Source: Macrostomum hystrix
Lineage: Eukaryota > Animalia > Platyhelminthes
Reading direction: 5' to 3'
Assembly (NCBI GenBank): GCA_950097015.1
Contig: CATNEN010000007.1
Location: forward strand, 682,001-746,000
DNA length: 64,000 nucleotides
Below are positions 10,310 to 41,109 of the stretch, one piece after another (position 1 is the stretch's first letter; the number at the start of each line of letters is the position of its first letter). The notes beneath the pieces are model-generated. The model made no database searches, was not told the origin of the DNA, and saw only the letters and a program-made list of their open reading frames with translations. Position numbers and translations under genes: made by a program.

Positions 10310-11006
10310 TAGAGATCCCGCAATCTAGAGATCCCGCAATTTAGGGATTACGCAGTCTAGGGATCACGCAATCTAGGGATCACGCAATCTAGGGATCTGC
10401 AATCTAGTGATCCGCAATCTAGAGATCACGCAATCTAGGGATCTGCAATCTAGTGATCCGCAATCTAGAGATCACGCAATCTAGTGATCCCGCAATCTAG
10501 AGATCACGCAATCTAGGGATCTGCAATCTAGTGATCCGCAATCTAGAGATCACGCAATCTAGGGATCTGCAATCTAGTGATCCGCAATCTAGAGATCACG
10601 CAATCTAGTGATCCCGCAATCTAGGGATCCGCAATCTAGGAATCACGCAATCTAGGGATCTGCAATCTAGTGATCCGCAATCTAGAGATCACGCAATCTA
10701 GGGATCTGCAATCTAGTGATCCGCAATCTAGAGATCACGCAATCTAGTGATCCCGCAATCTAGGGATCCGCAATCTAGGAATCACGCAATCTAGGGATCT
10801 GCAATCTAGTGATCCGCAATCTAGAGATCACGCAATCTAGTGATCCCGCAATCTAGAGATCACGCAATCTAGGGATCTGCAATCTAGTGATCCCGCAATC
10901 TAGAGATCACGCAATCTAGAGATCCCGCAATCTAGAGATCCCACAATCTAGAGATCGCGAAATCTAGGGATCACGCAATCTAGGGATCCCGCAATCTAGG
11001 GATCAC
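10310..11006. repeat. 15-16-bp minisatellite (gcaatctagggatcac) in the UTP25 3' UTR
   Basis: Read directly; the terminal unit contains the UTP25 stop codon (tca at 11003-11005). Confidence 0.93.
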
Positions 11007-14000
11007 GTGCAGTCAGTGGAGCCCAGCTCGGCTGCTCGCCGAGGGCCGCAAAGAGGCGCCAGCGAGTGCCAGTCGGTGGCCCTGTCCACCAGGATGGCGC
11101 AGGCTGGCGGCGAGCTGGCCGAAGCTGCGTCCGTCAAGGCCAGCCGGCAGAGCTCTTCGAAGAAGGCCGGATAAGTTGGCGGGCCGTAGAACAGCAGGTT
11201 GTGAATGCCGCGAATGCGCTGTCTATGGTAGAAATGGTAGCGCTCCGAGTACAGCAGAATGCGAACCTCGCCTTCTCGGAACAGGCCCTGGTAGCTGGGG
11301 TGGGGTAAATTTGTTGGTAAATCTGTATACTCATGTGATATTGCAGAGCCGGTTGCTAAGGCCTTTCTAAAATGATTTTCCTAGAAACACAAAAACGACA
11401 AGATTTTTTTCTAAGCAATGGAAATTAAATGCGTCGATTATAAAAAATATAATTGTAAATACATATGATTCTAAGCAAATAGAATAAATTATATACGATT
11501 CTAATAAATAGATAAACAAATTACTCTAATTATAAAAAAACCTACACGAAATGCCCCAGATTCTAGGAAACAACCAAACGTTTTCGATTTTACGAAACTG
11601 ATAATCAAATGCCTCTATTTCAAAGAAACCTACTCAAAATTTCTAAGATTCTAGGAAACGAGTAAACGCATTTGATTCCAAGAAACAGAAAACCTCACGA
11701 AAATGTGACCTTTTTTATCTGAACATCTGCACATGACCTACAAGGTCCTAGGGGGGAGGGGAGTGAAGGAACATGCATGCCAAATCACCTTGCCGCTTTA
11801 GTCTTGGGCGTGTACTCGCTGATGGCGCAGAAGTCCAGCTTCTCCTTGCGCAACTCGGCCCTGAGGTCGGCCCAGTCCAGGTAGCTGGGCGCGTACAGAA
11901 GCACCCGCCGCAGGCGCTGGCCCTCCCGGAGCCAGGGCAGCAGGCGCCGACGGAAAGCGGCTAACCTGGCGGCGGCCGCTTCGGCTGGGCCGGCTGAAGC
12001 GAACTGGACAAATTTCACCGACAACGGATTCGAACCTGCGACCATTGACGATGACAGACTACCGCCGAGTAGGCCGGCGTCGCCGAATAACTCGGCGTAG
12101 TTCGGCCTCAGCGCCAGCTTGCCGCGCCAGTTGCGCATTCGGCCGCCGAACAGGGCGGGCAGCTCCGGGAAATGAACGCCCGACAGGCAGACCGTCTGGC
12201 GGTACAGGCTCGCCCGGCCTTCCAGGTACCTGGGAAGAGGGATCGAGAGGTCGGAAGTTCGAAACTTGGAAACAGTCTATCAGCTGTCAACCCCAACCTA
12301 ACTCCAACCCAACGAAAACATCAGCTGTCATGCCCAATGTCCGTCAGCTGTCATGCCCAATGTCCGTCAGCTGTCATGCCCAATGTCCATCAGCTGTCAT
12401 GCCCAATGTCCATCAGCTGTCATGCCCAATGTCCATCAGCTGTCATGCCCAATGTCCATCAGCTGTCATGCCCAATGTCCATCAGCTGTCATGCCCAATG
12501 TCCATCAGCTGTCATGCCCAATGTCCATCAGCTGTCATTCCCAATGTCCATCAGCTGTCATGCCCAATGTCCATCAGCTGTCATGCCCAATGTCCATCAG
12601 CTGTCATGCCCAATGTCCATCAGCTGTCATGCCCAATGTCCATCAGCTGTCATGCCCAATGTCCATCAGCTGTCATGCCCAATGTCCATCAGCTGTCATG
12701 CCCAATGTCCATCAGCTGTCATTCCCAATGTCCATCAGCTGTCATGCCCAATGTCCATCAGCTGTCATGCCCAATGTCCATCAGCTGTCATGCCCAATGT
12801 CCATCAGCTGTCATGCCCAATGTCCATCAGCTGTCATGCCCAATGTCCATCAGCTGTCATTCCCAATGTCCATCAGCTGTCATGCCCAATGTCCATCAGC
12901 TGTCATGCCCAATGTCCATCAGCTGTCATGCCCAATGTCCATCAGCTGTCACGCCCAGATCACCCAAACGCACCAGAGCCGGCAGCGGAACAGATTAGCC
13001 TCGCCAGTTTCCTCAGGAATCTGATTAGCGGCTTCAACAATGTCCAACAGGCGGCACCAGTTCTGAGCAGCGATGGAATCAGCCTGATCGATAATCAGCA
13101 GTTCAATTGAGCTGAGCAGTCTGGGCTCCTCGGCCACAATATCCGCCAGACCCAAAGGCGAGGCGATGATCAAATCTGAGGCCGAGAATGGAGTGTACAG
13201 CTTTAAGGTGCGCTTGGCAACCGCCAAGCCTAGACGAAAATTGTCGTCCGAATTGGCGCCGAAAAGTTCCTCGAACTCCGGCGGCTTCTTGCCGCGCCGC
13301 CGATCAGCCTTGGCGTCGTCCGAGTTCGTCAGCCGGAATTCCTTCAAGAATCTAGCCCGATGACTGACAAGAGCGCCTGGGGGCAGCAGCGAGATCAGCG
13401 TTTCTACAGCTTTCAAAGCCGAGTCGCGAACCGGCAGCAGTAGGAGAACGCGCGGCCGAGCGAAGCCCTGATCTCGCAGAGCTTCAGGATCCGGAGCCGA
13501 GGAGGCGGACAAGCCAGCTGCCGAGTTGTTTCTGAGCACTAACCGGCGAGTCTTGTACAGGTGGTTGAGCAGGTGCAGGCAGTAGCACAGGCGGACGCGA
13601 TCGGCACTGTCTGGTCCGGGACGTCTGTCACGCAGCATGACATCGTGATATCCGGTCAGGAGCCGAAGCAGGCTGTCCCATTTGTTATCAATCGAGGCCG
13701 TTTGAACAGCAGACGAGTGAAGAAAGGCGACAAACTGTTTGGCGATGAACTCCTGATCATCCAGGCAAGCTTGAAGCTCGGGCAGGCAGCGGGCCAGCTT
13801 GTAGTAGTAAGTCTGCTCGCCGAAACCAGCCAACTGGAAGGTGTGGGTCAGGCACTGGGAGTCGCGGAGTGTTGACACATCTGACTCTGACAGCACCGCA
13901 GACAGATGACTGTGAAAACTGTCCGCTGCCGGTTGTTCGTTTAAGCGACTGCGCTTTGAATCGGCATTCGGCTCGGCAGCGTGAAGCTCCGACTCGCTGC

Positions 14001-14082
14001 CGCTGTTGTCTTCGTCAACGCCTTCAGCCTGCGAGACTGGCCGCTTCTTCGTCCGGGTCGCCAACGCTGACTGAGAGGCTGC
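11003..14082 (-). CDS. UTP25: U3 snoRNA-associated protein 25 / digestive organ expansion factor homolog; exons 14082-12974, 12229-11789, 11294-11003 (1842 nt, in frame)
   Basis: Family-typical motifs LRDQGFARPRVLLLLPVR, DDNFRLGL, KLYTPFSASDLIIASPLGL, LSSIELLIIDQAD and ILLYSERYHFYHRQRIRGIHNLLFYGPPTYPAFFEEL. GT-AG junctions keep frame. No genomic ATG at the 5' acceptor. Confidence 0.92.
12321..12950. repeat. 23-bp minisatellite (catcagctgtcatgcccaatgtc), about 27 copies, in the UTP25 intron 12973-12230
   Basis: Read directly; explains + ORFs 12045..13110. Confidence 0.95.
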
Positions 14083-14129
14083 CTGTAAGTCGGGTTTTAG
14101 TTAGAACATCATGCTCATTGCCGTCACAC

Positions 14130-14695
14130 TTCAAAGTCTTGGCCACTAACCCACTGACACTTCAGTGCCTTGGTCACTAACCCACTGACACTTCAGTGCC
14201 TTGGTCACTAACCCACTGATACTTCAGTGCCTTGGTCACTAACCCACTGATACTTCAGTGCCTTGGTCACTAACCCACTGATACTTCAGTGCCTTGGTCA
14301 CTAACCCACTGATACTTCAGTGCCTTGGTCACTAACCCACTGACACTTCAGTGCCTTGGTCACTAACCCACTGATACTTCAGTGCCTTGGTCACTAACCC
14401 ACTGATACTTCAGTGCCTTGGTCACTAACCCACTGATACTTCAGTGCCTTGGTCACTAACCCACTGATACTTCAGAGCCTTGGTCACTAACCCACTGACA
14501 CTTCAGTGCCTTGGTCACTAACCCACTGAAACTTCAGTGCCTTGGTCACTAACCCACCGACACTTCAGTGCCTTGGCCACTAACCCACTGACACTTCAGA
14601 GCCTTGGCCACTAACCCACTGACACTTCAGTGCCTTGGTCACTAACCCACTGACACTTCAGTGCCTTGGTCACTAACCCACTGAAACTTCAGTAT
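14130..14695. repeat. 31-bp minisatellite (ccactgatacttcagtgccttggtcactaac), about 18 copies
   Basis: Read directly; upstream of the UTP25 first coding exon. Confidence 0.95.
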
Positions 14696-15515: not shown

Positions 15516-16220
15516 TCATTTAGAGAAGACAGTGCTGGCCAGAAATAGCCGATAATCCAAATCTACAACTAGGGCAGCAGCTCGCAGATTATCATTTGAT
15601 TTCAAAAGGCCGCACATCTGCCTAGCCGAGTCGCGATAAATATGGCCAACCAAGCTGCGACTGGCGAAGAACAGTTCGCGTTCAATGCCAACAGGAGCTG
15701 GCGAATCCTCCGACACGCCCAAAGCGTCGCCTAGCAACTGGCGAGTACGCCGACGCTTCTCGGAGCAGGAGGCGTCGCAGGCGACATCTAACTGGCGACG
15801 GCTTTCCACTTCAATGAAGTGCGCCAGCCAGGACTCGCAGATGGCCCGGGCGGCATTGGACACTCGGCTATCGGCGTGACCGGTTAGTCGCTTCACATGA
15901 GCCCCAATCTTGGACGCCTTGAGCAGTTCGCGACTTGGTTGCTTGGCGGACAATTTGTTCAGCGTGTCCAACAACTGCTCGGCGCTTAGCTTCTCGGGCG
16001 CTTTGAGTAGCTCTTTGTAGCGATAGAGATCTTCCACAACTACAACACCGCGCATATCAGTGATACGCATCTGCCGACTGGAGCCTGAAGACACACCAAC
16101 TCCCGGACCTGTGTCCGCCTGGCGTCTAAGGAAATTGTCAATCTTCACCTGCCTCAAATGGCCACCCAGCTGCTGCTGCTGCCGCTGCTGGGGACGGCGA
16201 GCCGAGAATTGCGGTGGTGA
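15516..16220 (-). CDS. TCEANC2: Transcription elongation factor A N-terminal and central domain-containing protein 2; single coding exon after acceptor tttgcag
   Basis: MRGVVVVEDLYRYKELL...PSRELLKASKIGAHVKRL...IERELFFASRSLVGHIYRDSARQM parallels the TCEANC2 pattern (RVVVVEDIKRWK, PSREVLKSTRIGHTV, NIERETFHLCSRLINGPYRR). Start codon uncertain. Confidence 0.88.
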   Translation of the reverse strand, partial: SPPQFSARRPQQRQQQQLGGHLRQVKIDNFLRRQADTGPGVGVSSGSSRQMRITDMRGVVVVEDLYRYKELLKAPEKLSAEQLLDTLNKLSAKQPSRELLKASKIGAHVKRLTGHADSRVSNAARAICESWLAHFIEVESRRQLDVACDASCSEKRRRTRQLLGDALGVSEDSPAPVGIERELFFASRSLVGHIYRDSARQMCGLLKSNDNLRAAALVVDLDYRLFLASTVFSK

Positions 16221-16254
16221 CTGCAAATTTTAGTTGGGTTGAGCACTTGTAACT

Positions 16255-17040
16255 TTGTCTTCTCATTATTCTGTCCTTATCGATACCTGTCTTCTCATTA
16301 TTCTGTCCTCATCGATACCTGTCTTCTCAGCCTTCTGTCCTCATCGATACCTGTCTTCGTCTTCTCATTATTCTGTCCTCATTGATACCTGTCTTTGTCT
16401 TCTCATTATTCTGTCCTCATTGATACCTGTCTTCTCATTATTCTGTCCTCATTGATACCTGTCTTCTCATTATTCTGTCCTCATCGATACCTGTCTTTGT
16501 CTTCTCATTATTCTGTCCTCATCGATACCTGTCTTTGTCTTCTCATTATTCTGTCCTCATTGATACCTGTCTTCTCAGCCTTCTGTCCTCATCGATACCT
16601 GTCTTTGTCTTCTCATTATTCTGTCCTCATCGATACCTGTCTTTGTCTTCTCATTATTCTGTCCTCATTGATACCTGTCTTCTCATTATTCTGTCCTCAT
16701 TGATACCTGTCTTCTCATTATTCTGTCCTCATCGATACCTGTCTTTGTCTTCTCATTATTCTGTCCTCATCGATACCTGTCTTTGTCTTCTCATTATTCT
16801 GTCCTCATCGATACCTGTCTTTGTCTTCTCATTATTCTGTCCTCATCGATACCTGTCTTTGTCTTCTCATTATTCTGTCCTCATTGATACCTGTCTTCTC
16901 ATTATTCTGTCCTCATTGATACCTGTCTTCTCATTATTCTGTCCTCATTGATACCTGTCTTCTCATTATTCTGTCCTCATTGATACCTGTCTTCTCATTA
17001 TTCTGTCCTCATTGATACCTGTCTTCTCAGCCTTCTGTCC
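16255..17040. repeat. 32/38-bp minisatellite (ttctcattattctgtcctcattgatacctgtc with optional tttgtc)
   Basis: Read directly; explains ORFs 16255..16951. Confidence 0.93.
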
Positions 17041-17597
17041 TGTTTTTACACAAAAAATGGGATGAAAATCACCAGTTTATTTGGGGGAATAAAGTCAACT
17101 TCTGCGCATAAACTTTGCCTTCTTTCCTCCTCAGCTAATGTCGACCCTAGCCCCATCTGCACAATGATATACCAGCTCCATATTCCCAATCACACAGCAC
17201 AACTGGAACTTACACAATAAATATACAAGCGTGGGGCGAGTGTCTCTGGCTCACACATTCCTGTCACCAACTCCTCAACTTCCCTCAGTCTCCTGCATTA
17301 GTGAAAAGTAGGATTAGGGCGCACACATAGCAGAAGTTGGGAGAAGCAGACTGGCTGACAGACGAATCGATGCACTGAAAGCTACGAGCTAGAATGAAAA
17401 CAGAGAGGCGGACTCGGGGGGTGGGGTGGCTGTTCGCCCTACGATACCAGAGACAGAATACTAACGCTGAGTACACACACACAAACAGCTGCTGCTGATG
17501 CAATCGTGATTCAATCATACATATTAATGAGATAATCTGGGCTAAGAAATATAGATATGAAAATAAGTTATGCCTTCTATCTGATTCCGGACATTAA

Positions 17598-17815: not shown

Positions 17816-20250
17816 GACAGGTAGATAACCTGAACAGACAGGCAGATAACCTGAACAGACAGGCAGATAACCTGAAGAGACAGGCAGATGACCTGAACAG
17901 ACAGGCAGATGACCTGAAGAGACAGGCAGATGACCTGAAGAGACAGGTAGATGACCTGAACAGACAGGCAGATGACCTGAAGAGACAGGCAGATGATCTG
18001 AACAGACAGGCAGATGACCTGAAGAGACAGGTAGATGACCTGAACAGACAGGCAGATAACCTGAAGAGACAGGCAGATGACCTGAAGAGACAGGCAGATG
18101 ACCTGAAGAGACAGGTAGATGACCTGAAGAGACAGGTAGATGACCTGAACAGACAGGTAGATGACCTGAACAGACAGGCAGATGACCTGAAGAGACAGGC
18201 AGATAACCTGAAGAGACAGGCAGATGACCTGAACAGACAGGCAGATGACCTGAACAGACAGGCAGATGACCTGAACAGACAGGCAGATGACCTGAACAGA
18301 CAGGCAGATGACCTGAACAGACAGGCAGATGACCTGAACAGACAGGCAGATGACCTGAACAGACAGGCAGATGACCTGAAGAGACAGGCAGATGACCTGA
18401 AGAGACAGGCAGATAACCTGAAGAGACAGGTAGATGACCTGAACAGACAGGCAGATGACCTGAAGAGACAGGCAGATAACCTGAAGAGACAGGCAGATGA
18501 CCTGAAGAGACAGGCAAATGACCTGAAGAGACAGGTAGATGACCTGAACAGACAGGCAGATAACCTGAACAGACAGGCAGATAACCTGAAGAGACAGGCA
18601 GATGACCTGAACAGACAGGCAGATGACCTGAAGAGACAGGCAGATGACCTGAAGAGACAGGCAGATAACCTGAACAGACAGGCAGATAACCTGAACAGAC
18701 AGGCAGATGACCTGAAGAGACAGGCAGATGACCTGAAGAGACAGGCAGATGACCTGAAGAGACAGGCAGATGACCTGAAGAGACAGGTAGATGACCTGAA
18801 CAGACAGGCAGATGACCTGAAGAGACAGGTAGATGACCTGAACAGACAGGCAGATGACCTGAAGAGACAGGCAGATAACCTGAAGAGACAGGCAGATGAC
18901 CTGAACAGACAGGCAGATGACCTGAACAGACAGGCAGATGACCTGAACAGACAGGCAGATGACCTGAACAGACAGGCAGATAACCTGAACAGACAGGCAG
19001 ATAACCTGAACAGACAGGCAGATGACCTGAACAGACAGGCAGATGACCTGAAGAGACAGGTAGATGACCTGAACAGACAGGCAGATGACCTGAAGAGACA
19101 GGCAGATAACCTGAAGAGACAGGCAGATGACCTGAAGAGACAGGCAGATGACCTGAAGAGACAGGCAGATAACCTGAACAGACAGGCAGATAACCTGAAG
19201 AGACAGGCAGATGACCTGAACAGACAGGCAGATGACCTGAACAGACAGGCAGATAACCTGAACAGACAGGCAGATAACCTGAAGAGACAGGCAGATGACC
19301 TGAACAGACAGGCAGATAACCTGAAGAGACAGGCAGATGACCTGAACAGACAGGCAGATGACCTGAAGAGACAGGCAGATGACCTGAAGAGACAGGCAGA
19401 TGACCTGAAGAGACAGGTAGTAGACCTGAACAGACAGGCAGATGACCTGAAGAGACAGGCAGATGACCTGAAGAGACAGGCAGATGACCTGAAGAGACAG
19501 GCAGATGACCTGAAGAGACAGGTAGATGACCTGAACAGACAGGCAGATGACCTGAAGAGACAGGTAGATGACCTGAACAGACAGGCAGATGACCTGAAGA
19601 GACAGGCAGATAACCTGAAGAGACAGGCAGATGACCTGAACAGACAGGCAGATGACCTGAACAGACAGGCAGATGACCTGAACAGACAGGCAGATGACCT
19701 GAACAGACAGGCAGATAACCTGAACAGACAGGCAGATAACCTGAACAGACAGGCAGATGACCTGAACAGACAGGCAGATGACCTGAAGAGACAGGTAGAT
19801 GACCTGAACAGACAGGCAGATGACCTGAAGAGACAGGCAGATAACCTGAAGAGACAGGCAGATGACCTGAAGAGACAGGCAGATGACCTGAAGAGACAGG
19901 CAGATAACCTGAACAGACAGGCAGATAACCTGAAGAGACAGGCAGATGACCTGAACAGACAGGCAGATGACCTGAACAGACAGGCAGATGACCTGAAGAG
20001 ACAGGCAGATGACCTGAAGAGACAGGCAGATAACCTGAACAGACAGGCAGATAACCTGAAGAGACAGGCAGATGACCTGAACAGACAGGCAGATGACCTG
20101 AACAGACAGGCAGATAACCTGAACAGACAGGCAGATAACCTGAAGAGACAGGCAGATGACCTGAACAGACAGGCAGATAACCTGAAGAGACAGGCAGATG
20201 ACCTGAACAGACAGGCAGATGACCTGAAGAGACAGGCAGATGACCTGAAC
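17816..20250. repeat. 21-bp minisatellite (agacaggcagatgacctgaa[g/c]), about 116 copies, no net frameshift
   Basis: Read directly; variants at mainly three positions. The minus-strand ORFs 17542..20313 and 17793..20327 are repeat translations. Confidence 0.96.
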
Positions 20251-20760
20251 AACTCTGTGAGTATTACAAGCGCAGGTACAATTGGAGAACACTGAAAGCA
20301 GCAATAACTGCAAATATCAGAACTCACCTACAAGTAATTAAAATAATTGATGCCGTATGAGAAGATAAGTCAAATCAATTGCATCTAATAAAACCGACGG
20401 AAATTAATATCCTATATCCATGCAATTATCGTTAAAAGCCGTGAGATTGACTCGCATTTTCCTACAAGATCATATATGAACACTCAATAAGATAAGCACA
20501 AACTAAGAGTACAAACACATATAATTGAAAGAAGAAAGATTTAGCCAGCTGATTAGTAAAGTGAAATCGATTTTCTTATTTAGTTTATTATTTTATTGAT
20601 TATTATAAGATTAACGCAGTTTAGGAAACTGACGCACAAAGAAATTCATTTTAAATTGGCATCTATAACTCGCCCATTAGAAAGCCGATAGTCAATAGCC
20701 ATTGGTGTCAATTGTTGCTGTCTTAATTCCAATTCGTCAAGCATTCCCTGTAGTTCAAAA

Positions 20761-23700: not shown

Positions 23701-24194
23701 ACCAGTACAGACAGGCACCCAGTAAAGATAGGCACCAGTACAGACAGACACCCAGTACAGACAGACACCCAGTACAGACAGACACCCAGTACAGACAGAC
23801 ACCCAGTACAGACAGTACGCCGGTTAGTCCGGTGGTTATATATCGGACTAACCGTCATCTTGGTGGTCATTGCCGGGTCCGTGACAGCGGCCAGCTCGTG
23901 AGCGGCGAAGATCCTGTGCGGATTGTTCTGAAAGTCCAGCACTGAGATGAAGCCGGCCCGGCAGACCTTCTTGAGTCGCTGGTAGGACAGCTCGCGATCT
24001 TCGTCTAGGCTGACATTGTAGCGAGGCTGAAACAGCGGATCGGCCGCCATGAAGGCCTTCATCTTGTCGCGCATGTCATGATTGTCGTGATCCAGGACTC
24101 GCTTCAGTTCGGCGGTGGCGCCGGACGAGTACAGGCGATGCGGCAGCTGCGTGAAGCTGAGGCTATGGCTGACTCGCGTGAGGCGATGCATCAT
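20761..24194 (-). CDS. Acyl-CoA oxidase family flavoprotein; exons 24194-23853, 23530-23073, 22438-21992, 21388-20761 (624 aa)
   Basis: Motifs [83 protein letters not shown] and [12 protein letters not shown]. All GT-AG junctions are in frame. Exact ortholog unclear. Confidence 0.92.
21570..21850. repeat. 21-bp minisatellite (gaaatcccagtgaattcatga) in ACOX intron 3
   Basis: Read directly. Confidence 0.9.
22513..23045. repeat. 21-bp minisatellite (gaatgatgatgggtgaacagt), about 25 copies, ACOX intron 2
   Basis: Read directly. Confidence 0.95.
23620..23815. repeat. 16/17-bp minisatellite (cagtacagacaggcac) in ACOX intron 1
   Basis: Read directly. Confidence 0.9.
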
Positions 24195-24219
24195 CTTGAA
24201 ATGTTTGGGAATGAGGATC

Positions 24220-28100: not shown

Positions 28101-31100
28101 CACCTGAGGCAGGAGCGAGGCTCCGTCGCCATTTGCTGGCGGAAGGTGCGACTCTATCAGACGCCAATTGGCTCGCCAGACATCCGATGTTAGCGACCTT
28201 TAAGCAAACGGAATATTTGGCTACAGAATAACAGACTCCCTGACAATGAGTACTGACAGACTCCCTGACAATGAGTACTGACAGACTCCCTGACAATGAG
28301 TACTGACAGACTCCCTGACAATGAGTACTGACAGACTCCCTGACAATGAGTACTGACAGACTCCCTGACAATGAGTACTGACAGACTCCCTGACAATGAG
28401 TACTGACAGACTCACTTGACAATGAGTACTGACAGACTCACTGACACTATATATGTACTCTGATACTAAATACGTACTCTGACACATCCGGACAATTTTA
28501 AGACAGACCCACCGAACAACAGCCTGATAGAAGGCCTCCTGACTGCCATCCCGTAGAGGGGCACTAAAAGCGTTCCTCAGTCTATTCGAATAGTCATTAG
28601 CGGTGGCTTTGAGTCCTTTAAACAAACGTTTAGCGGCTAGTCGTCTGGCGTGCGACTGCAATAGCAGGGCGCATGACTGCAGCCTGGCTCTGGTGCGATA
28701 CATGCCCAGAATATGACGATAGTGACAGAACACATCCTTGCGGCCGACTAACAGCGGACCGTCTGAAGTTATTAATTGCGAGATATTGCTTATAATTAAA
28801 TATGCTTTGTTTAAATAATACCAGGGAGCTTATAGTCACTACTGGAGTGGTCTGGAGTTCGAATTTCAGCGCGATGAAAAATCGATTAATGCAAGACACT
28901 CAATACATGGTTTTTTAGTTCAGAAAACTGTACTGGAACGAACATTTGTTTAATTTAATTTAAAAAAGGAGAGATAATTATAATAACAAAGACCAATCAG
29001 GTTTTAGTACTTGTAACGCTAAGTGTTTCAGTTACTCAGATTAGTTTTTACGCCTCACCGTAAGTTTGCTTAGCAACCCGCTTGATATACTGTCCAGCCT
29101 TAAAACAGTCCTGACTGCATTCTTTGTCAATACCGACTTGGCAAGCACCCAGCTGACCAGCCAGAGTGTACGGCAGTACAGCGTCGGAGAATGTAACCAA
29201 GAATCGATGCCTGGAGGCCGAGCATTGAAACAAGTTGCTAGCTTTAACAGCAGCCAAGTGGCAAGCTCGAAGACGCATCAGAGCCTGTGAAGACGGCAGC
29301 GATAACGAAGGCAATCGATCGATGAACAGCAACTTGACGTCAACGCACTCCGAAGACGCTGTCAAATTTAACTGTTCAGGATCAGTCAGCAACGAAGTCA
29401 ACAATGTTAAACTGTGAGTAGTCAGCGTTTTTGATGCCGAAATCTGCTGTTGCTGCTTTAAAGTCAGCGATGATTGGGCAAGGAACACGCTGGCTGCTTC
29501 CGCCTCGTATGGCGCTAGAGAAGACAGGCTTGCGAGGCGGTAGGTTCGACTGCCCAGCCAATGGCTGACTTCGAGCAATGTCTAGATTGTCGTGGCGGAT
29601 GGAGAGGGCAATATATCTAATACATTGACAAAATAATAATAAATCGATATTTAATAGACACAAGTTAAACAATGCGAGAGAGCTACTACTATTAAGTCTT
29701 CTTAAGACTCGTACAGGTTTGCACGTGTAATTCGTAAAACTGCATTTTAAGGATTATGCAGGGCCACCTTCAAGGTCAATCGAAAATCTTAAAAGCCAAC
29801 GAATCCTGGCTTCGAGATGTGCGGAACAGTTTTTCACTTGTTGGGCATATCGACATCAAGGCTACAACCTAGTTGCAGACAAATATTATTGAATTCAGGA
29901 CAAACAATTACGAGTCCCAGTAACAAACCTGCTCAGTTCCACCGCCTTTGACTTTAGAAATTCGAAAGACTTCCAACGCAGAAGTTCCAGCCGCAGACGA
30001 TTTCTTAGCAGCTATGACAGGATCTCCGCGGCCAAAAGCCACACCAAGAAGAGTGGGCGCCTTTGCGCTGCCCAAAGAACGATAAGCGTCGATAAGACCG
30101 ACTGAAGGAGCAGATTTTTCTAAAGCCTCCACGTAGCCTCTAGTGGCTAGAGCTTGGGAGTCTACTTTAATTGCGTCTTTGTCCAATAAAGCCAAGGGGG
30201 TTGATGTAATCAAACGAGCGCGAAGGCAGCCAAACAAGTCGCATAGATAGTTGAATTCGAAGCTCATCGCTTCACGTGCGGGTGTCGCAGCTATTGGCAT
30301 TGATGCACTCGCATCGACCTGACCACGCAACAAGTCGGTCGGCCCAATCAGCAGCGTCATGCGACCAACTGCGCCACTGCCTTGGGTGACAGTTTCGCAC
30401 AATCGACAAGCGGCTAATCTTTGATTAATCCGGTCAACTACAAACTGCACTAGCCTGCGATAGATGGCTCTAATCATGCCGGCTAGAGCGGCATTACACT
30501 CTTCTGCGGTGCGGTTTCTCAGCGCCTTTCTGTGACCGTCGCGTAGTACTTCGTATCTGTGTTCAGACGAGACAGATGTTAAGTGACGAAGTCTAATTTT
30601 ATTTTACAGAACGATTTGAACAGAAAACTCAAGCACATACCTAATAGTGACCTCCCGCATTAGCGAATCCATCTCAAGACCCAGCAGTCGAGCTGCCCTC
30701 TCCAGATTCTCGTGCCGTTCAAACTGCACGCATTTCTTTGGCTTGCGCGAATCTGGCACAACTCTGACAAGGCGCAGATTTAGCGCAGCCGCAGCGCAAC
30801 GATAAATGAAGTCCAGATTTTCATCGGAGAAGTTAAACACTTCGACGAGGCGGCGAGCTACGTTAATATGACGTAAGCGATCCTCCGATTCCAGCGTAGC
30901 AAAGGCAGGCGGAAAAGCCGTTGAGAGCGCCACTTCGGCATCGTCAAGATAATATTCAGCCCTGGCGGACTCATTGGCATGCTCCATCAGCGAGTAGAAG
31001 AAGCAAAATGCGGTGAAATCTTCCGCTTCTAATTCTGAACGGCTTAGAACGCCGTAGCCCATTAGCCAGAGAAGATCGTATTTGATGCTAGTAAGATCGC

Positions 31101-31695
31101 CATTGTCATTGAAACTGGCACGCAGCATTGTCACCGAATGATTGTCGAGAACAAGACGATTGTCTAGCTTACGATAGACGCAGGTGAACGCTTGCACTAA
31201 CTCTAGGCTAGCTTGAACCAATGGTCGGGCGGACAATATTGGAGCGTCCTTAGCAACTAGTTGGACTAGCCTCTCTACGACATCCAAATCGTAGGCACAA
31301 ATCAGCAGGGGACGCGTGGTTAGCAACAGGCTGGGATCGGCTTTGCTGTACAACTGACTCTTGGCGCAGGCGTAAAAGTTGGTAATTGTTGGCGCATTGC
31401 AGCAAGGATACCAGGCGCAACTCTTTGGAACATCCGCATCTGGCTCCGAATTTGAAGTTGAGTCGGCTTCATCGTGAGATAAGTTGCCAAGCAACAGCGA
31501 TTCGCCGCACCATTGCGGCGAATCAAATTCGGCATCATTAGAAGTGAGCATCAACTGAAGAAGCTGCTCCTCCGTGCGCCAGTCGCCAAGCTCAAGGATG
31601 TCCCGTTGGAAATTGCCAACAGTAGTCATGCTGCCTAGCACTTTCTCAGTAGCAGGTGAAGGACGCACAAGAAATTCGTTCTCACGAGTAGCGAT
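25186..31695 (-). CDS. Highly divergent myosin-like protein (degenerate motor domain, IQ motif, unassigned tail); exons 31695-30641, 30556-29929, 29581-29059, 28762-28513, 28197-27945, 26753-26241, 25395-25186 (3432 nt, in frame)
   Basis: Collinear myosin landmarks: LVQASLELVQAF, FCFFYSLM (FHIFYQLL), FNFSDENLDFIYRCAAAALNL (LGFS.EE...I...LAAILHL), LERAARLLGL, MIRAIYRRLVQFVVDRINQRL (LAKALYSRLFDWLVxRIN), VSHWLGSRTY (IxHYAGxVxY), LLVGRKDVF (YQxGKTKVF) and IQ-like LQSHARRLAAKR. Seven exons splice in frame. Confidence 0.8.
25430..25850. repeat. 23-bp minisatellite (ctagccaaagttttctaagaaat) in the last intron of the myosin-like gene
   Basis: Read directly. Confidence 0.88.
26815..27050 (-). mobile_element. 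tRNA-derived SINE, family 2
   Basis: Minus strand has A-box-like tagcctcttgg and B box gggttcgattc, then cagctgaggtaatt...gtccatggactgaac shared with 14750-14822 and 61575-61738. Confidence 0.6.
28230..28445. repeat. 25-bp minisatellite (ctccctgacaatgagtactgacaga), intronic
   Basis: Read directly; fills the intron between exons 28513 and 28197. Confidence 0.92.
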
Positions 31696-32624
31696 CTAAA
31701 CTGGCGCCAATCTTTATATGCGGGCAAACTAAATCGCAGTTCAGTAAAATTTACAGACGCACAAGATACTAACCAGAGCACCCGAAAGAAGACAGAGAGA
31801 GACAGTGTGTATTACCCACGGGAATATTTCTTTAACACCAGATAAGATACCCTATAGGCTAGATTATTCTGCTGTCAAAGTCTATGCGAACAATCTTTCT
31901 GATACAAAAAAATGATAGGAATCGTTAAGTAACTTACAGACTATTAATAATTCTGACACGAATAGGGTGGGTGCGACCTAAAAATGCGAATAATACTACT
32001 TTTAGTCCAGCTGTGTAACCAAGTAGTATTTTTGTACTTTTCTTGCACAGGCCTTAAATATGATTCCTTAAAATGAGACTAGACTCAAAATGGATTAAAT
32101 AAAAAGATATAAACCCTTTTTATTGCCCTGTGATGACACAAAAAGCGAGTTTCAATTACGCAAAGCATATTTACTTTATATTCTCACAGTAAGACTAAGG
32201 CATCGTTTTGGCAAACCATAAAAGAAATGTTCAGAATTCTAGCAAGTTCTTGGTAGATTATACAATTATCAAGAAAGTCTTGCACAGGCAACAGCTATTG
32301 CATGTGGCGGCAGGAATTCGGACTAAGTAACAAAAGCAACGGATGAAACCATTTGCCAAGACAATAATTTTACATAACCAAGGCCACATCCGAATAGCAC
32401 AGGAATTATGAATTATGACTACTAGTGCATTATATTATGAGTAGCCAGAGCTATAGAAAAAAGTGCAGCACTTTTCATTACAAAAAGTAAAAAACAAGAA
32501 TCTGAAAATCTGTCTCTAAACCAGATACTTTCATTATATATGCTATAAAAGGAGTGCAGCCGCTGTTCCTAAAAAAACTAGAAATTAATGAAAATTGAAA
32601 GGTTGAGAGGGTGTAGGGTAAGAA

Positions 32625-33300
32625 TTGTAGTAGGTACAGGGTAGGAATTGTAGTAGGTACAGGGTAGGAATTGTAGTAGGTACAGGGTAGGAATTGTAGT
32701 AGGTACAGGGTAAGAATTGGAGTAGGTACAGGGTAAGAATTGGAGTAGGTACAGGGTAGGAATTGTAGTAGGTACAGGGTTAGAAATGTAGTAGGTACAG
32801 AGTTAGAAATGTAGTAGGTACAGGGTTAGAAATGGAGTAGGTACAGGGTTAGAAATGTAGTAGGTACAGGGTTAGAAATGTAGTAGGTACAGGGTAAGAA
32901 TTGGAGTAGGTACAGGGTAAGAATTGGAGTAGGTACAGGGTAAGAAATGTAGTAGGTACAGGGTTAGAAATGTAGTAGGTACAGGGTTAGAAATGTAGTA
33001 GGTACAGGGTTAGAAATGTAGTAGGTACAGGGTAAGAAATGTAGTAGGTACAGGGTTAGAAATGTAGTAGGTACAGGGTTAGAAATGTAGTAGGTACAGG
33101 GTTAGAAATGGAGTAGGTACAGGGTAAGAATTGGAGTAGGTACAGGGTAAGAATTGGAGTAGGTACAGGGTAAGAATTGGAGTAGGCACAGGGTAAGAAT
33201 TGGAGTAGGTACAGGGTAAGAAATGTAGTAGGTACAGGGTAAGAAATGTAGTAGGCACAGGGTAAGAAATGTAGTAGGTACAGGGTTAGAAATGTAGTTA
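32625..33300. repeat. 23-bp minisatellite (gtaggtacagggttagaaatgta), about 29 copies, between COG5 and the myosin-like gene
   Basis: Read directly. Confidence 0.93.
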
Positions 33301-33412: not shown

Positions 33413-36400
33413 CTATCCTTCCTCATCAGCCGCGTTATCCCTATCGTCTCCCGTGCCCCGCTGAGCAGCGTTGAGATGTGCATTGACCAGTGTGAGCAGT
33501 ACGGGATAAACCGGGGCGTATTCCTTTAATCCCCTCGACTGGGCAGACTTTGCGTAGGCGGCTAGGGCGCCGTGTACAAACCGGAGCCTGTCGGATTCGT
33601 CCGGATGGTCTAGCAGCCAAGACACGTAGCGGCTCACCTGAGTGACAGATTTAAAGTTGAGGCTTGCGCTCTTTAACAGATGCAATACCACTTTATAACA
33701 CTTAAAATTACTTTTAAATGGGAAATTTCAATGCAAATGATCCTGAAATGGGGATATTAAAATGACCTTGAACTGGGGATCTGAAATGAAAATGACCTTG
33801 AACTGGGGATCTGAAATGAAAATGACCTTGAACTGGGGATCTGAAATTAAAATAACCTTGAAATGGGGATCTGAATTAAAAAATATCCTAAAATGAGCAT
33901 TTGACCCTAAAATAGGGATCTGAATTTAAAATGATCCTGAAATGGGATTTCAAACCAAAATGACGCTAAAATGGGGATCTGAAAAAATGACCTTGAACTG
34001 GGATCTGAATTTAAAAAGATCCAAAAATGAGTATTTGAAATTAAGTTGACCTTGAACTGGTGGTCTGCAGTCAAATTATATTAAAACCGAGAAGCTAGGA
34101 AGATTATATCTGAGGATCCTAGAAAAAATGGTACTCACCGACCAACCAGCGGCGGTGTGAGGCGATTGCATATCGGCAGGCGCCCTGGAGAACAGCAGGT
34201 GAGCCACCAGGCTAGCAGGCAGGGAGTCGCCAATGGACGGATTATTAGCCACGTGGTGAGCTGACTGGAATAGCAGAGGCCGAAAAGCGCGCAGTCGCCG
34301 ATAGTGCTGGCCGAGATCCGACACGCGGCGGCACAGTGGCGACAGGGCCAGCTCTAGTTGGGCGCAATCCGCAGCCAATCGCAGCCGGCCGGACTCGGCT
34401 AGCGGCCTAACCAAACTGGCCAATAGGAGGAAGACTTCGATGCACTGGCACGCGATTGGCTGCAGACTGGAGTAAAGGAAATCCCGCTGGCGATAGCTGG
34501 CCAGGTACTGCTGAGCCACTCGGCTGACAAACTCCTGCAGTGGCAAGGAATTTGTTGTAATTCTTCTTAGACTAAGGCTCTGATCCTCTTTATGGAAATA
34601 TTTCTATATCCTCAGATTTGCGAATACTACCAGATCCTCAGATTTGGGAATATTACTATATACTCAGATTTGGGAATACTTCTATATCCTCAGATTTGGG
34701 AATACTACCAGATCCTCAGATTTGGGAATATTACTATATACTCAGATTTGGGAATACTTCTATATCCTCAGATTTGGGAATACTACCAGATCCTCAGATT
34801 TGGGAATACTACCAGATCCTCAGATTTGGGAATACTTCTATATCCTCAGATTTGGGAATACTACCAGATCCTCAGATTTGGGAATACTACCAGATCCTCA
34901 GATTTGGGAATACTACAAGATCCTCAGATTTGGGAATACTACAAGATCCTCAGACTTTATAATACTACAAGATCCTCAGATTTGGGAATACTACAAGATC
35001 CTCAGACTTTATAATACTACAAGATCCTCAGATTTGGGAATACTTCTATATCCTCAGATTTGGGAATACTACCAGATCCTCAGATTTGGGAATACTTCTA
35101 TATCCTCAGATTTGGGAATACTACCAGATCCTCAGATTTGGGAATACTTCTATATCCTCAGATTTGGGAATACTTCTATATCCTCAGATTTGGGAATACT
35201 ACCAGATCCTCAGATTTGGGAATACTACCAGATCCTCAGATTTGGGAATACTACAAGATCCTCAGATTTGGGAATACTACAAGATCCTCAGACTTTATAA
35301 TACTACAAGATCCTCAGATTTGGGAATACTACAAGATCCTCAGACTTTATAATACTAAAAGATCCTTAGATTCTCAGACACGCTAACCTGAAGCTCCCTC
35401 ATGTACAGTGAGCACTGCTGCTGCTGCTGTTGCTGCGCAGTCTGCTGGGACTGCTGCGAAGGCTGATCGAATCGCTCCTGATGCATAGTTAGCAAAATCG
35501 CTTCTAAACTGTCGCGAATCGAACCCAGCAGCGGCTCCAGGGTTTGAGTCATAAGCTGGCGCAGTTCTGCCAGGCCTCCGTCCAACAGGCCGACAGCGGT
35601 GTCAGGCAGGTCAGCTGAGAGCAGCGCTGATCGAAGGTCGTGACTGAGCTGGCCAAGCATGTTCACTAGGCTCGCGTTGGTCTGAAGCGGGGGTTCAAGC
35701 AATGGTGGCATCGCAATTAAATGGGCGTTGCAAAACTAGACAAACAGAAAGCTATTTGGGCAAAAGTTCTGAAAGAATAGCTAAGGAAATCCCGAATATT
35801 TGTCTCAAAAAAATGGTGTCCTAAATACCAACAACAAGGATCTTAATGTAATTATTCTAAACAAAGCATTAATCTCTAAATATGAGTTTTTATTCTTTTA
35901 CAAATAGGATTCTACGCGATGTACATCCCAACTGGAATCCTAAAAATGAAACTTTGATCTTAATCTCTGAAAAACGAATATTAAGCTTTAAAAAATTCTT
36001 ATTCCCTCAAAACAATTAAGGATGTTAATCTCGCAAATAATTTTTTAATCCCGCAAACAGTTTTTTAAATCCTAAAAACAATTATGTTAATACCGCAAGC
36101 GACTGTGCTAATCCCAAAACAAATGATGTCAATCCCTATAACAAGGATGTTTATCCCTATAACAAGAACGGTAATCGCTATAATAAGGATGTCAATCCTA
36201 ATAAAAAAAGGATGTTAATCCCAAAAACTCAACCGGATCTTACTTTTAAAACTCCCAAAAATTATTTTAAAAACGAAAACCTAAGAACCTAAGAAATAAT
36301 CTGAACCCCAATAGACCGTAGCTTTGAAAATCTACTAACCTGCTGCCCCTCAGTGGGAGGTCCCAGCACTTGACTAGCGGTGGCGTCGGCCACCCGCGTA

Positions 36401-39400
36401 GCTTCAGCTTTGCGACAGACGAACTGCACAGTCTTGAGCACATTCTTGGCAATCTTTAGCAGCAGATCCTGGTCAACCTGGGTGAAGGTCAACTCGGAGG
36501 TCATGGCTTCGACAATGCGACGAATCTCCGACTCGCTGTTTAGCGAACGCTGACCGCCGCTGAACATGGCGTCCACCGGATCGAATAGGCGACTGAGGGA
36601 CCTGGGCGGAGGACAGGGCGTGACTGGCTTGGAGCTGAGAAAAAATCGCAGATTTTAGCTAATATTTTACTTCATACTAGCGCAATATAGCGAAACAGAC
36701 AAATAAACATTTATGCATCCATACACAATTCATGACCAAGACCAATCTAAATCCAAGACAAATCTAGAACCAAGACCAATTCAGAACCAAGACAAATCCA
36801 GAACCAACACATTTCCAAAACATAGACCTTTCTAAAACAAAGAACAATCTTGCGCCAAGACCAATCTAAAACCAAGACCTTTCCAAAACCAAGACCTTTC
36901 CAAAACCAAAACCTTTCCAAAACCAAGACTAATCCAAAACAAAGACCTACAAAAAAACAAAGAGCAATCTAAAACCAAGACCAATCCAAAACGAAGACTA
37001 ATCTATAAAGACTAATCCAAAAAGCCTATCTCAAACCAAGATCGATCTAAAACCAAGACCAGTGACCGAACCTGGACAGATAGGCAGCCTCAAAGCTGGC
37101 CAGATGCGCCCTGCCAAGCGGTGGCAGCTCTTCATCAACCGCTGCCAGCCTAGCCGTCAGCTCATTCGACGATTTCAATAGTCTCGGGTATTCGCCCTCA
37201 AACGCGTGCTTTAAGAATGCGGAAGCGCCGGCAGCCGTTGACAGACTGTCGCGCAGACAGTCGGAGAGCCAGTCGGCGAAGGCAGACGGGCTGATGGCAT
37301 CGGCTGCGGCGGTGGACAGCAGGTCCGATAGCGGTCGCTGCGTGTTGGGATCTCGCTTCTTGGCTAGTATTCGGCGCAGGCTGGCCAGGAACTGAGCCCC
37401 AGAAATGGCCTCCTCGTTCAAAGCGTCCAGGCCGGACCAGAGGGCCTGCGAGTAGGCCGCTGATTGGCCCGCCGGAAGGTTGGCGCGCCCTGGATGGCCG
37501 CCGCTGCCGCTCCTGCAGAGTCCGGGTTGGCGCGAGAGTTTAAGCGTCAAGTTTACAACATCAAGCTCACGATTGTCGAGATTTCCGATCCCTAGAAACT
37601 GGGATTTCCAATTCCTAAAAATTGGAAATGTTTACAACATCAAGCTCACGATTGCCGGGATTTCCGATCCCTAAAAATCCGGGATTTCCAATCCCAAAAA
37701 CGGGGATTTCCGATCCCTTAAAACAAGGACTTCCAATTCCTAAAAATCCGGGATGTCCTATCACTAAAACTGTGATCTACCACCCCTCAAACACTCTTAC
37801 TATTATCTTATAATATATAACATTCTTACACTCCAGACCCGGTAGCCGGGTGCCCAGATCCTCCTAGAAAGGGCGTTTTCTGCATCAGCGCCGACATGTC
37901 CAGCGCTGAGGCGACTCGGTCACGCAGGTCGGACCGGACCCGGCCGGCCAGGTCAATTATGCAGTCGTCCAATCTGCCCAGGCAGAAAACTGCGTGCAGG
38001 CAGGCGGCCAGTTGCGGATGCGGGCCAGAGTGCGCCCCTAGCGACGGTTGCTAAGGAAAAAATGAATACAGTAATTTATAAAGGCAAGTTTTATTTGACT
38101 GTAATGTCTTCCCCTAAAATTAGCTTTCCAACACAATACCACTGGAAACGTCGAAGGTAAGAAAATAGGAAACCTTATGGCAATTGTAACTATGCAGATA
38201 TAATCCGCATAGTAACTGTAACTTATAACAAGAATATCCCTCTAACAACGTTATCTTTGTAGATGTTTTACATAGATCATCGTCACGATGGGTAAATATT
38301 ACGACTAAATCTCCTTACCAACGGTAGCTAAGCTAAATCGGTTACAACCCCTTAGCAACGGTAACGCGCGTTAATCAGCTACAGCTACATTCCTTTGGTA
38401 ACGGTATCTCTTCTCATTAAAATCCCCTCAGAAACAGCAGCTAAAATTATCAGCAAAAGCCGCTCACCAAACCAGACGCCGCTCCGACGCCCCTTGCATC
38501 GGCTAGCAGTGCTGTGGCCCTGGCCTCAGCGGCATCTCTCCACCTGGCGAACCGCCTGTGCTCCCGCTCCAGAGCGTGCACGCCGCGCCAATCCAAGCCG
38601 GAGAACTGGTGCGCCAAATCGCCCAGCGTCTGCGCCACCTTGCCCAGCTGGTCCTCCGGCAGACTGGCCGCCTCCTCGGCGCCGGAGCCCGACTGCGCCG
38701 GCAGCTTCTTGGCCAGGGCGAAGATGCGGCTGGCGCGTCGAAGAAAATCGCAGGCGGCCTGCACCCGGCGCAGGTGAGTGACCCGCTGCTCCAATCGGCC
38801 GTAGGGTTCGCCAATTCGAGCTCGAATCTTTTGCAAGCCTAGCAACAGGGCGCCAGTGCGAGATTGCACCACTGACAGCACCGATTCCAGGGTGTCGATG
38901 CCAGTGGCGCGAGACAGCAGGTCTTTGTGATGCCGGACAACGTGACGCTCGATGTCGCTTTCGAGTCTTTGTTAACATTTTAAGAACTAAGATTTAATAG
39001 CAATAATATATTACAATTTGCATAGCAACGGTTGCTAAGGCTTACTAAAATCCATCACAGTAACTTCTCTAAGCTTAACAGTACAAAAATATAATAGCAA
39101 CGCAGAAAAAATTATTGTAGTGAGAAATTGCTTAACTTATTTATTGGTAATAGTCAGCAGAGAATAAGAAATTACTCTTGATAATTTCAAATGCTTCTTT
39201 GACTGAGATTCGAACACGTGACCTTTCGGTCAGGTTTCCAAAGCCCTAACGACTGGTGCACAATCTGGCTATTGTTAAAACGATTGCTAAAGTCTAATAG
39301 CTAGGCGAAGCACAATAAGATTAAGAACTCACTTAGCAATGCAGGCGTCAATCTTTTCAATAACCTCGCTGACGACTTGCGTCTGCAGTACAGTGATAGC

Positions 39401-39469
39401 GAACGACTTCTCATCAAATGTGTCGCCTTCAAAAACTGCCAAAAATTCGTCATTTTCTTCGCCATTCAT
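33413..39469 (-). CDS. COG5: Conserved oligomeric Golgi complex subunit 5; exons 39469-39333, 38966-38468, 38050-37830, 37512-37072, 36601-36340, 35681-35388, 34534-34139, 33637-33413 (824 aa)
   Basis: Motifs HKDLLSRATGIDTLESVL, RLRRVQAACDFLRR, YPRLLK, YLSRSLSRLFDPV, CSLYMRELQEFVSRV, VRPLAESGRLRLAADCAQLELAL, LRAFRPLLF, LFSRAPADMQSPHTAAGWS and YAPVYP. The eight exons total 2475 nt in frame. Confidence 0.95.
33740..34060. repeat. Degenerate ~30-bp repeat (aaatgaccttgaactggggatctgaaatga) in the last COG5 intron
   Basis: Read directly; degenerate. Confidence 0.7.
34605..35370. repeat. 26-bp minisatellite (atcctcagatttgggaatactaccag), about 29 copies, COG5 intron
   Basis: Read directly; explains + ORFs 34592..35386. 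Confidence 0.94.
36735..37060. repeat. Degenerate ~19-bp repeat (aaaccaagac...) in a COG5 intron
   Basis: Recurrent accaagac units. Confidence 0.7.
39195..39265 (-). mobile_element. tRNA-like SINE head fragment in COG5 intron 1
   Basis: Minus strand accagtcgttagggctttggaaacctgaccgaaaggtcacgtgttcgaatctcagtc includes a B-box-like gtgttcgaatc; no convincing full cloverleaf. Confidence 0.4.
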
Positions 39470-41109
39470 TGTCTCATCAGATCTGGCTGATAACTGCAGA
39501 TTAAGGAAGAATATGGTCCATTGTAAGAAATATACAACCGAAAACATTGCGAACTGCCAGACCAAGAATTCCCTATGAAAACAGATTAGTGCACAAGGTT
39601 TGAAATATGCCTTGTGGTTGCACATATTCCAAGCATTTATTTAAATTTAGGCATATTATTTCAGAGAAAGCTCACTATTTTACATTTCCCACATATTTTA
39701 GTAATAAGATTCTGACCAGCTACTTTAGTCACTAGGAGACTCAGAGACTTTAGATTAGAAAATGAGCTATGGCCTAGTAGTTGATTAAAAATAAGGCTAG
39801 AGAGACCCAAAACTTATCAATTGCTAATAGTATCATAGAAATTGATTGGCAATAAAGTTTTATATTGAAACTTAAGTAATAACCTTAAAACCCATTCAAT
39901 TGCCCAAAAAAAGAAACAGCAAACTATTATTCTTCATTTATAAGCAAGCGCTCTATAAATATAAAGATTATTAATTTTGTTTTATTCATAAAGTTATAGA
40001 TGTCTGATAAAAGGTTAGGTTGTAAATTTTGTTTAAATATGATATTTGATTTGGGGTTAAGAGTGTAATGCTTAAAACACACCATATTTAAACTATATAC
40101 AGGCATATTTACAGGCATTAGCAATGACTACAAAGAGATTCTCATGACAAAATAAGAATGAGATTTCAATGTAAACAATAAACTATACACAGTTGTACTA
40201 AATGGGAATTTAATTGATGTTTCATTAGGTTTTTCAAGCTTAAAATTGCTTGCTTTGTTGAAGTTCACTTAATAGAAGTCAGTGGCAATTCATTAGAAAT
40301 GGTCTGAAAGCTAATTTTCTACACTTTTATAAGTTGGATTGTTTTGGCAAGTTCCAAAATCTTTTTTTAACTTGCTGCTTAAAGTAACTTGTAAAGTTAG
40401 GGCCTAATAGCTAAAGTCATTATATTAACTAAAAAATACATGTGCAAATCAAATAGAAGCATCATTTAAAATGTATAGGCCTATTTCATTTATGCTATCC
40501 TTGGAACCAATAGGCAGTTCTTTGCCAATAAAATAGTTCCTAATTATGATAATGGCACAGAAAGCATACCTGCCCTATCAATATGCAGCATACCCCTATG
40601 AATTGCTATTGAGTTCTGTTACATAAGCCTCACAAAGCAAGCAACTTAAAGCTTGAAGCACCAACTAAAACATCAATTTAACCCTCAATTGGTTCCATTT
40701 GATATAACTTTGTATAGTTTGTTATTTACATTGACATCTCATTCTTATCATGTAGGCGGACTCATCACTAATTGTTTTGAATGGGTTTATACTTTAAGCA
40801 TAACAGTTTACACTTTAACCACTCATTTAAACTCTAATTTACAGTTATGTAGGCCTAGAAGACACAGGAGCCTATTTTTCTAGTCTTTTAGATACCAATA
40901 AGTGGGCCTTGTTACCACAGTCCCATAGCAATTTACTCATTATTCTGCAAGTTATTGACATGGTACTGTGCCAATAAGCATTATCATTTATAATTTTTAA
41001 AAAGTAACTTTTATAATTAAATTTCATTTCTCAGTTCGATACCCATTGGAGACAAAGGACACAGAACTCAAGCAAGCTAAGTCACTTCTATTACTTCTTC
41101 AAGCAATAT

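Follow-up and report, generated by a model that had tools for sequence, protein, structure and literature searches.

Candidate start codons donated by the spliced leader to a TCEANC2-like gene and UTP25 in a conserved co-directional gene run of Macrostomum hystrix

That a spliced leader (SL) can donate the start codon was already known for flatworms in 2006 (Cheng et al., as cited in PMC12582326). In Macrostomum lignano, the sequence of a 35-nt SL has been published, trans-acceptors follow the motif [T/C]TNCAG, and operons were delimited as trans-spliced neighbors with a repeat-adjusted spacing of < 1 kb; repeats inflate the spacers of these operons, and 18% of operons start with a gene that is not trans-spliced (Ustyantsev and Berezikov, 2021, PMC8629364). 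In M. hystrix, 10-20% of genes are trans-spliced, and the final ATG is probably contributed by the leader (Wiberg et al., 2023, PMC10468722). The latter study, which covers M. hystrix and M. cliftonense, gives genome-wide rates only, with no operon analysis or gene-level starts that depend on the leader AUG. We analyzed a 64,000-nucleotide stretch of M. hystrix DNA, termed the window (assembly GCA_950097015.1, contig CATNEN010000007.1, positions 682,001 to 746,000, forward strand), in which the genes COG5, a myosin-like gene, ACOX, a TCEANC2-like gene, and UTP25 follow one another on the minus strand. An earlier note on this DNA, made from the sequence alone, had proposed that the five genes form a single operon, and that the AUG of the SL is the initiator of every one of them.

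The locus resembles the known leader-AUG system of flatworms in that the leader AUG lies directly before the donor, and that the recipient exons open in phase 0 and have no ATG of their own. It differs in belonging to the order Macrostomorpha, in its recipients (the TCEANC2-like gene and UTP25), and in that junction and translation are inferred here rather than measured. It also shares with the SL-resolved operons of M. lignano its same-strand neighbors, [T/C]TNCAG acceptors, repeat-dominated spacers that shrink to around 1 kb or less once repeats are subtracted, and a first gene that may not be trans-spliced. In contrast to those operons, two of the four spacers reach or exceed 1 kb, and trans-splicing is predicted from DNA (compare PMC8629364). 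With M. hystrix and M. cliftonense SL trans-splicing, it shares the same conserved leader (PMC10468722).

We favor, with moderate confidence, an explanation that combines leader-donated starts for the TCEANC2-like gene and UTP25, own starts for the other genes, and possible polycistronic units. The conserved co-directional run consists of five housekeeping-type genes. In two of them, TCEANC2-like and UTP25, the genomic start codon would have been lost or would never have existed. The YTNCAG acceptors at 16220 and 14082 would receive the 35-nt leader by trans-splicing and so become the beginnings of the mRNAs, and the terminal AUG of the leader would serve as the initiator, giving M-SPPQF... 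for the TCEANC2-like protein and M-AASQS... for UTP25. The myosin-like gene starts at its own ATG, probably from its own TATA-type promoter. One or two polycistronic units (myosin-like to ACOX and TCEANC2-like to UTP25, possibly all four genes) would be resolved by trans-splicing, with spacers that lineage-specific minisatellites have inflated. The five genes, in the direction of their transcription, are the following:

33413..39493, minus strand, COG5 gene (open reading frame (ORF) and Pfam; stop TAG 33415-33413)
25186..31695, minus strand, divergent myosin-like gene (ORF and Pfam; stop TGA 25188-25186)
20761..24218, minus strand, ACOX-type acyl-CoA oxidase gene (exon 1 end 23853; stop TAA 20763-20761)
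15516..16220, minus strand, Med26/TCEANC2-like gene, single exon (stop TGA 15518-15516)
11003..14082, minus strand, UTP25 gene (exon 1 from 14082 to ~12958; stop TGA 11005-11003)

A Pfam scan of the open stretches, for which the exons of spliced genes were queried one at a time and not as joined proteins, detected COG5_N and COG5_C in the COG5 gene, Acyl-CoA_dh_M, ACOX_C_alpha1, and ACOX in the ACOX gene, Med26 (a TFIIS-type helical bundle, as in TCEANC2) in the TCEANC2-like gene, and UTP25_NTPase-like and Utp25_C in UTP25; the Myosin_head match in the myosin-like gene was weak and below the cut-off. With this sub-threshold match as the weakest, the gene names proposed in the earlier note are borne out. 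On the minus strand between 11003 and 39493 only these five collinear genes were placed; the plus strand had no gene screen of its own. In M. lignano (GCA_002269645.1), the orthologous loci were located by searches with the TCEANC2-like protein and the protein of the myosin-like exon, and then through the contig of the hit. All five genes occur in the same order and orientation on the M. lignano contig NIVC01000460, and two paralogous contigs carry the downstream part. The consecutive minus-strand run is thus co-directional, as had been proposed, and collinear in M. lignano.

The 35-nt SL of M. lignano recurs with 0 mismatches many times in the M. hystrix assembly, for the most part in arrays that repeat every ~11.6 kb; no leader copy was found inside the 64-kb window. 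One copy reads ...CAATTTATTGCATG|GTAAG (...TTGCATG|GTAAG), with an AU-rich Sm-like site and then a hairpin behind it. In M. hystrix, too, the AUG at the leader end thus directly abuts the donor, which confirms for M. hystrix the assertion that flatworm leaders end in this triplet. Position -3 of the leader AUG is a U, a context that would favor leaky scanning.

The five AG sites from which the proposal had started are all present on the minus strand: ctgcag|TTA at 39493 (COG5), tttag|ATC at 31695 (myosin-like), ttccag|ATC at 24218 (ACOX), tttgcag|TCA at 16220 (TCEANC2-like), and ttacag|GCA at 14082 (UTP25). Each junction is in phase 0 with its downstream ORF, and the frame stays open for 54 (COG5), 363 (myosin-like), 198 (ACOX), 234 (TCEANC2-like), and 377 (UTP25) codons. 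Past the acceptor, the first in-frame ATG is codon 8 in COG5, 22 in the myosin-like gene, 8 in ACOX, 50 in the TCEANC2-like gene, and 148 in UTP25. The motif [T/C]TNCAG is matched by four of the five sites, the exception being GTTTAG at the myosin-like gene. Within the 260 nt scanned upstream of each site, the COG5, TCEANC2-like, and UTP25 sites are the sole matches; ACOX has three matches, of which the site at 24218 is the nearest and those at 24404 and 24373 belong to further units of a 31-bp array. An in-frame AUG that is encoded in the genome and precedes the conserved coding sequence is absent from the TCEANC2-like gene and UTP25 and present in COG5, the myosin-like gene, and ACOX. The part of the claim that made the leader AUG the initiator of every gene is accordingly retained for the two genes that lack a usable ATG of their own, and not for the three that have conserved ones.

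In the TCEANC2-like gene, the acceptor TTGCAG ends at 16221, and the exon opens at 16220 with TCA CCA CCG (S-P-P; TCACCACCG from 16220). The first in-frame ATG, codon 50, is at 16070; four codons upstream of the acceptor there is an in-frame stop, with no ATG in between. Compared with M. lignano, codons 1-50 show 73% amino-acid identity and a ratio of nonsynonymous to synonymous differences (pN/pS) of 0.24 in frame 0; the two other frames give 3.15 and 2.38. The first 47-50 codons contain no ATG in either species, and the M. lignano codon that matches 16070 is GTG. Because of the low frame-0 pN/pS, the identity of 73%, and the lack of an ATG, we take codons 1-50 to be coding, with no genomic start. 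M. lignano has three TCEANC2 paralogs, all named 'partial' in the RNA-based GenBank annotation. In one of them (L008), the coding sequence opens directly after cccccag| with S-P-P, the same residues as in the M. hystrix exon.

In UTP25, the acceptor TTACAG ends at 14083 and the exon opens at 14082 with GCAGCCTCT; a CTAAC ~17-21 nt upstream of the AG would fit a branch point. The first in-frame ATG is codon 148 (13638), and an in-frame TAA lies seven codons upstream of the acceptor, again with no ATG between. Over codons 1-148, pN/pS is 0.55 in frame 0 and 1.03 and 1.67 in the two other frames, and neither species has a stop there; a conserved block, SFHSHLSAVL...STLRD, is located ~95 codons upstream of the first ATG. 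The M. lignano UTP25 protein starts within one codon of the M. hystrix acceptor position. At this point M. lignano has a genomic ATG (tttcATG|GCC) in two of its three copies (L008:10806-10808 and L009:11689-11691) and CTG in one (L007:11653-11655). Since M. lignano has a genomic ATG where M. hystrix has an acceptor, the position of the initiator was kept and its source is apparently different. Both UTP25 and the TCEANC2-like gene are single copy in the M. hystrix genome and should therefore be functional, and no paralogs or processed pseudogenes of either gene with a leader scar were found in that genome.

Judged from these sequences, an AUG donated by the leader is most likely the start of both genes. 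The upstream open frame could instead be 5' untranslated region (UTR), with initiation at the first genomic AUG (16070 and 13638) or at a non-AUG codon; the Med26 and UTP25 NTPase-like domains do both lie downstream of these ATGs. We regard this as very improbable indeed, in view of the frame-specific synonymous excess and the lack of stops upstream of the ATGs in two species whose synonymous divergence (dS) is saturated, and of the GTG found in M. lignano in place of the ATG at 16070.

Further observations concern the UTP25 gene of the two species. The three M. lignano UTP25 models start just past the ATG/CTG position, as if they were 5'-partial. We considered a leader fossil before the M. 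lignano ATG, where TATTTCATG matches the last nine nucleotides of the leader, TATTGCATG, at 8/9 positions, and rejected it, a score this high being reached in 36% of shuffles. The likeness of TATTTCATG to the leader end might have led to over-trimming in the published M. lignano annotation. A single-T indel that turns CAG| into CATG was also dropped, as the upstream regions are too diverged between the species for base-level homology. Nucleotide alignment upstream of the UTP25, TCEANC2-like, and myosin-like starts of the two species likewise gave no base-level homology, again from excessive divergence. A 16/46-bp tandem array at 10303-11005 starts directly at the UTP25 stop TGA. No AATAAA or ATTAAA occurs in the 900 nt downstream of the stop, so the 3' UTR of UTP25 would be minisatellite.

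COG5 and ACOX have starts of their own. The COG5 acceptor CTGCAG ends at 39494, and the ATG of the gene is located 24 nt downstream at 39469-39467 (MNGEENDEFLAVF...). The ACOX acceptor TTCCAG, in the last unit of the 31-bp array, ends at 24219, and the ATG at 24194 is likewise 24 nt downstream; from it, the protein reads MMHRLTRV..., a presequence-like N-terminus. COG5 is collinear with M. lignano L010 1416-9256, with homology beginning at the ATG. For both genes, homology with M. lignano begins at these ATGs (MNGEE... and MHRL...), and in M. lignano each ATG is preceded, eight codons upstream, by an in-frame TAA. When the myosin-like gene is included, the distance from in-frame stop to ATG in M. 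lignano ranges over 5-8 codons. The likely M. lignano ACOX acceptor is ttcctcag|CTT TAA, at which a leader AUG would open a frame of two codons. Given that homology starts at the ATGs and that stops precede them in M. lignano, an in-frame leader AUG is neither conserved nor required for COG5 and ACOX.

The two sites are probably real acceptors nonetheless, because a random point in the window has a motif-matching acceptor within 30 nt at a rate of only 0.10. Given such an acceptor, the chance that it is in frame and open is ~0.3 each for COG5 and ACOX, and the in-frame leader AUG at these two genes is probably a coincidence. If there is trans-splicing at 39493 and 24218, the leader AUG would add eight residues or be bypassed. 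The earlier note had put the phase agreement of five sites out of five at about 1 in 243 by chance. This figure does not hold, as the phase of the myosin-like site is automatic (see below) and those of COG5 and ACOX are expected at ~0.3 each; independent backing for a phase-0 open frame is confined to the TCEANC2-like gene and UTP25. Phase-0 acceptors alone should thus not be taken as functional, because an in-frame leader AUG before an own ATG is not conserved in M. lignano.

Two further features of ACOX were noted. The protein ends ...GEIVG, with no obvious SKL-type peroxisomal signal, and N-terminal extensions are also present in ACOX homologs of other animals.

The acceptor claimed for the myosin-like gene at 31695 proved to be an artifact of the ORF boundary. 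Its tttAG (31697-31696) belongs to an in-frame TAG, the stop at which the frame upstream terminates, and since the site is the TAG that bounds the ORF, phase 0 is automatic. The sequence, GTTTAG, is off motif, and the motif scan found no better acceptor within 260 nt upstream. The own ATG of the gene is at 31629-31627 (MTTVGNFQRDILELGDW...). The M. lignano ortholog (P0015; 1113 aa, 71% identity) starts MATARVAKDILELGDW and aligns with the own ATG start MTTVGNFQRDILELGDW. The own ATGs of COG5, the myosin-like gene, and ACOX thus all align with M. lignano starts (MNGEE, MAT..DILELGDW, and MHRL, respectively). Upstream of the ATG lies a possible promoter element:

31712..31718, minus strand, candidate promoter element, a TATAAAG box that precedes the myosin-like ATG by 89 nt

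In M. lignano a TATAAAG is found ~126 nt upstream of the myosin-like ATG, and in both species the motif TCTGTCTT occurs 70-75 nt further upstream of TATAAAG. With modest confidence, we consider this region a candidate promoter of the myosin-like gene itself.

Short-period tandem arrays occur throughout the window, in introns and over most of each spacer. The principal arrays of the spacers are the following:

32615..33298, no strand, 23-bp minisatellite in the COG5 to myosin-like spacer
24215..24821, no strand, 31-bp minisatellite that fills the myosin-like to ACOX spacer; its last unit contains the ACOX acceptor
17816..20251, no strand, 116 copies of a 21-bp minisatellite unit, ACOX to TCEANC2-like spacer
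16253..17041, no strand, 32-bp minisatellite, end 33 nt upstream of the TCEANC2-like acceptor
14126..14693, no strand, 31-bp minisatellite, end 44 nt upstream of the UTP25 acceptor

Several units of the 31-bp array before ACOX carry TTCCAG or YTNCAG (exon starts 24404 and 24373), and this array is therefore a ladder of potential acceptors. From COG5 to UTP25, each stop is separated from the following acceptor by 1717, 967, 4540, and 1433 nt, respectively. Without tandem repeats the spacers measure 1033, 364, 1315, and 865 nt, values that include 3' UTRs and from which transposable elements were not subtracted. By the < 1 kb yardstick, the myosin-like to ACOX and TCEANC2-like to UTP25 pairs qualify, and COG5 to myosin-like and ACOX to TCEANC2-like are borderline. 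Acceptors that match the motif are found at ACOX, the TCEANC2-like gene, and UTP25, the candidate trans-spliced downstream genes. AATAAA is present downstream of ACOX at 20597-20592 and 20589-20584, and downstream of the TCEANC2-like gene at 15065. COG5 probably opens its own transcription unit, because ~5.8 kb, including an AT-rich stretch, separates it from the upstream genes.

Between ACOX and TCEANC2, both species carry 2.4-3.1 kb of minisatellite whose units are unrelated (a 21-mer in M. hystrix and a 28-mer in M. lignano, L007:6598-9719). This suggests repeated, independent growth of arrays at the same spot. The collinearity of the genes across a saturated synonymous divergence is compatible with operon constraint, and an operon or two sub-operons are plausible from the layout of the locus.

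A single operon that runs from COG5 to UTP25, with the leader AUG as the selected functional initiator of all five genes, did not withstand these comparisons, and we consider it very unlikely. It would be in keeping with five phase-0, open sites, four of them on motif, in co-directional genes that are collinear in M. lignano. It is at odds with the conserved own ATGs of three genes, which have in-frame stops upstream in M. lignano, with a myosin-like site that is an off-motif TAG stop and has TATAAAG upstream in both species, and with the two spacers that exceed 1 kb after repeat subtraction.

At the other extreme, each gene may have its own promoter and outron, with no operon, and the TCEANC2-like gene and UTP25 (perhaps also COG5 and ACOX) would be trans-spliced as monocistronic transcripts. 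Only ~40% of the trans-spliced genes of M. lignano are in operons, ~60% being monocistronic (PMC8629364), the raw spacers here span 1-4.5 kb, and synteny among congeners is widespread (PMC10468722). However, the sequence almost directly before the ACOX, TCEANC2-like, and UTP25 acceptors is minisatellite and not unique, promoter-like sequence, and two repeat-adjusted spacings (364 and 865 nt, with UTRs counted) are within the range published for operons. We view the absence of any operon as possible but doubtful. We propose only tentatively, and as something that may well not be so, that the start codon of UTP25, an essential gene of ribosome biogenesis, has turned over between the congeners, and that a block of four to five genes was kept as an operon over a saturated synonymous divergence despite the unrelated minisatellites that inflate its spacers.

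Several points weigh against leader-donated starts within polycistronic units. The exact start of UTP25 is not fixed by conservation, since constraint on its codons 1-50 is very weak (pN/pS 0.85). In M. lignano, no AG precedes the UTP25 start, and trans-splicing at this position is therefore not conserved. The ACOX to TCEANC2-like spacer is 4.5 kb long, and the collinearity with M. lignano may reflect general congener synteny rather than operon constraint. Word searches of protein collections with the TCEANC2-like exon, five N-terminal fragments, and the UTP25 N-terminus detected no leader-prefixed product, a result that is blank rather than negative; they returned only one M. lignano protein and unrelated ACOX homologs. 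Finally, a small upstream cis exon could supply the ATG of the TCEANC2-like gene, UTP25, or both, as acceptors alone do not tell cis- from trans-splicing. Such an exon is unlikely, given that each of the three M. lignano TCEANC2 paralogs has an RNA-based model that is 5'-partial and begins at the acceptor, and that upstream minisatellite extends to within 33-44 nt of the M. hystrix acceptors.

Both the mechanism and this type of operon are already published, and the TCEANC2-like gene and UTP25 are a further example of modest general significance. The sole mildly novel point is the apparent difference at UTP25, a genomic ATG in M. lignano and an AUG borrowed from the leader in M. hystrix. If the leader-donated starts are real, an essential nucleolar protein and a TFIIS-family factor would be clean candidates for genes whose output depends wholly on trans-splicing, with a bearing on how leader dependence evolves in genes. 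Gene callers that rely on ATG will truncate such genes or call them partial. Leader dependence of this kind also matters for the design of transgenes and knock-ins in Macrostomum models.

Outside the starts and spacers, Rfam and tRNA scans of the 64-kb window gave no matches. A stretch of the myosin-like gene (26708-27039) resembles, in a tblastx comparison (up to 92% over 25 aa), L009:16049-16432, which follows UTP25 in M. lignano, and is probably a shared repeat or transposable-element fragment. In M. lignano, a gene of 299 aa with no Pfam family is located on the opposite strand inside the myosin-like gene (L010:16925-17824). Upstream of the cluster, minus-strand ORFs with no assigned identity occur at 45-49 kb, and at 51711-56636, also on the minus strand like the cluster, a single open frame of 1642 codons encodes many ankyrin repeats and, after them, an Ion_trans domain (a TRP-type channel).

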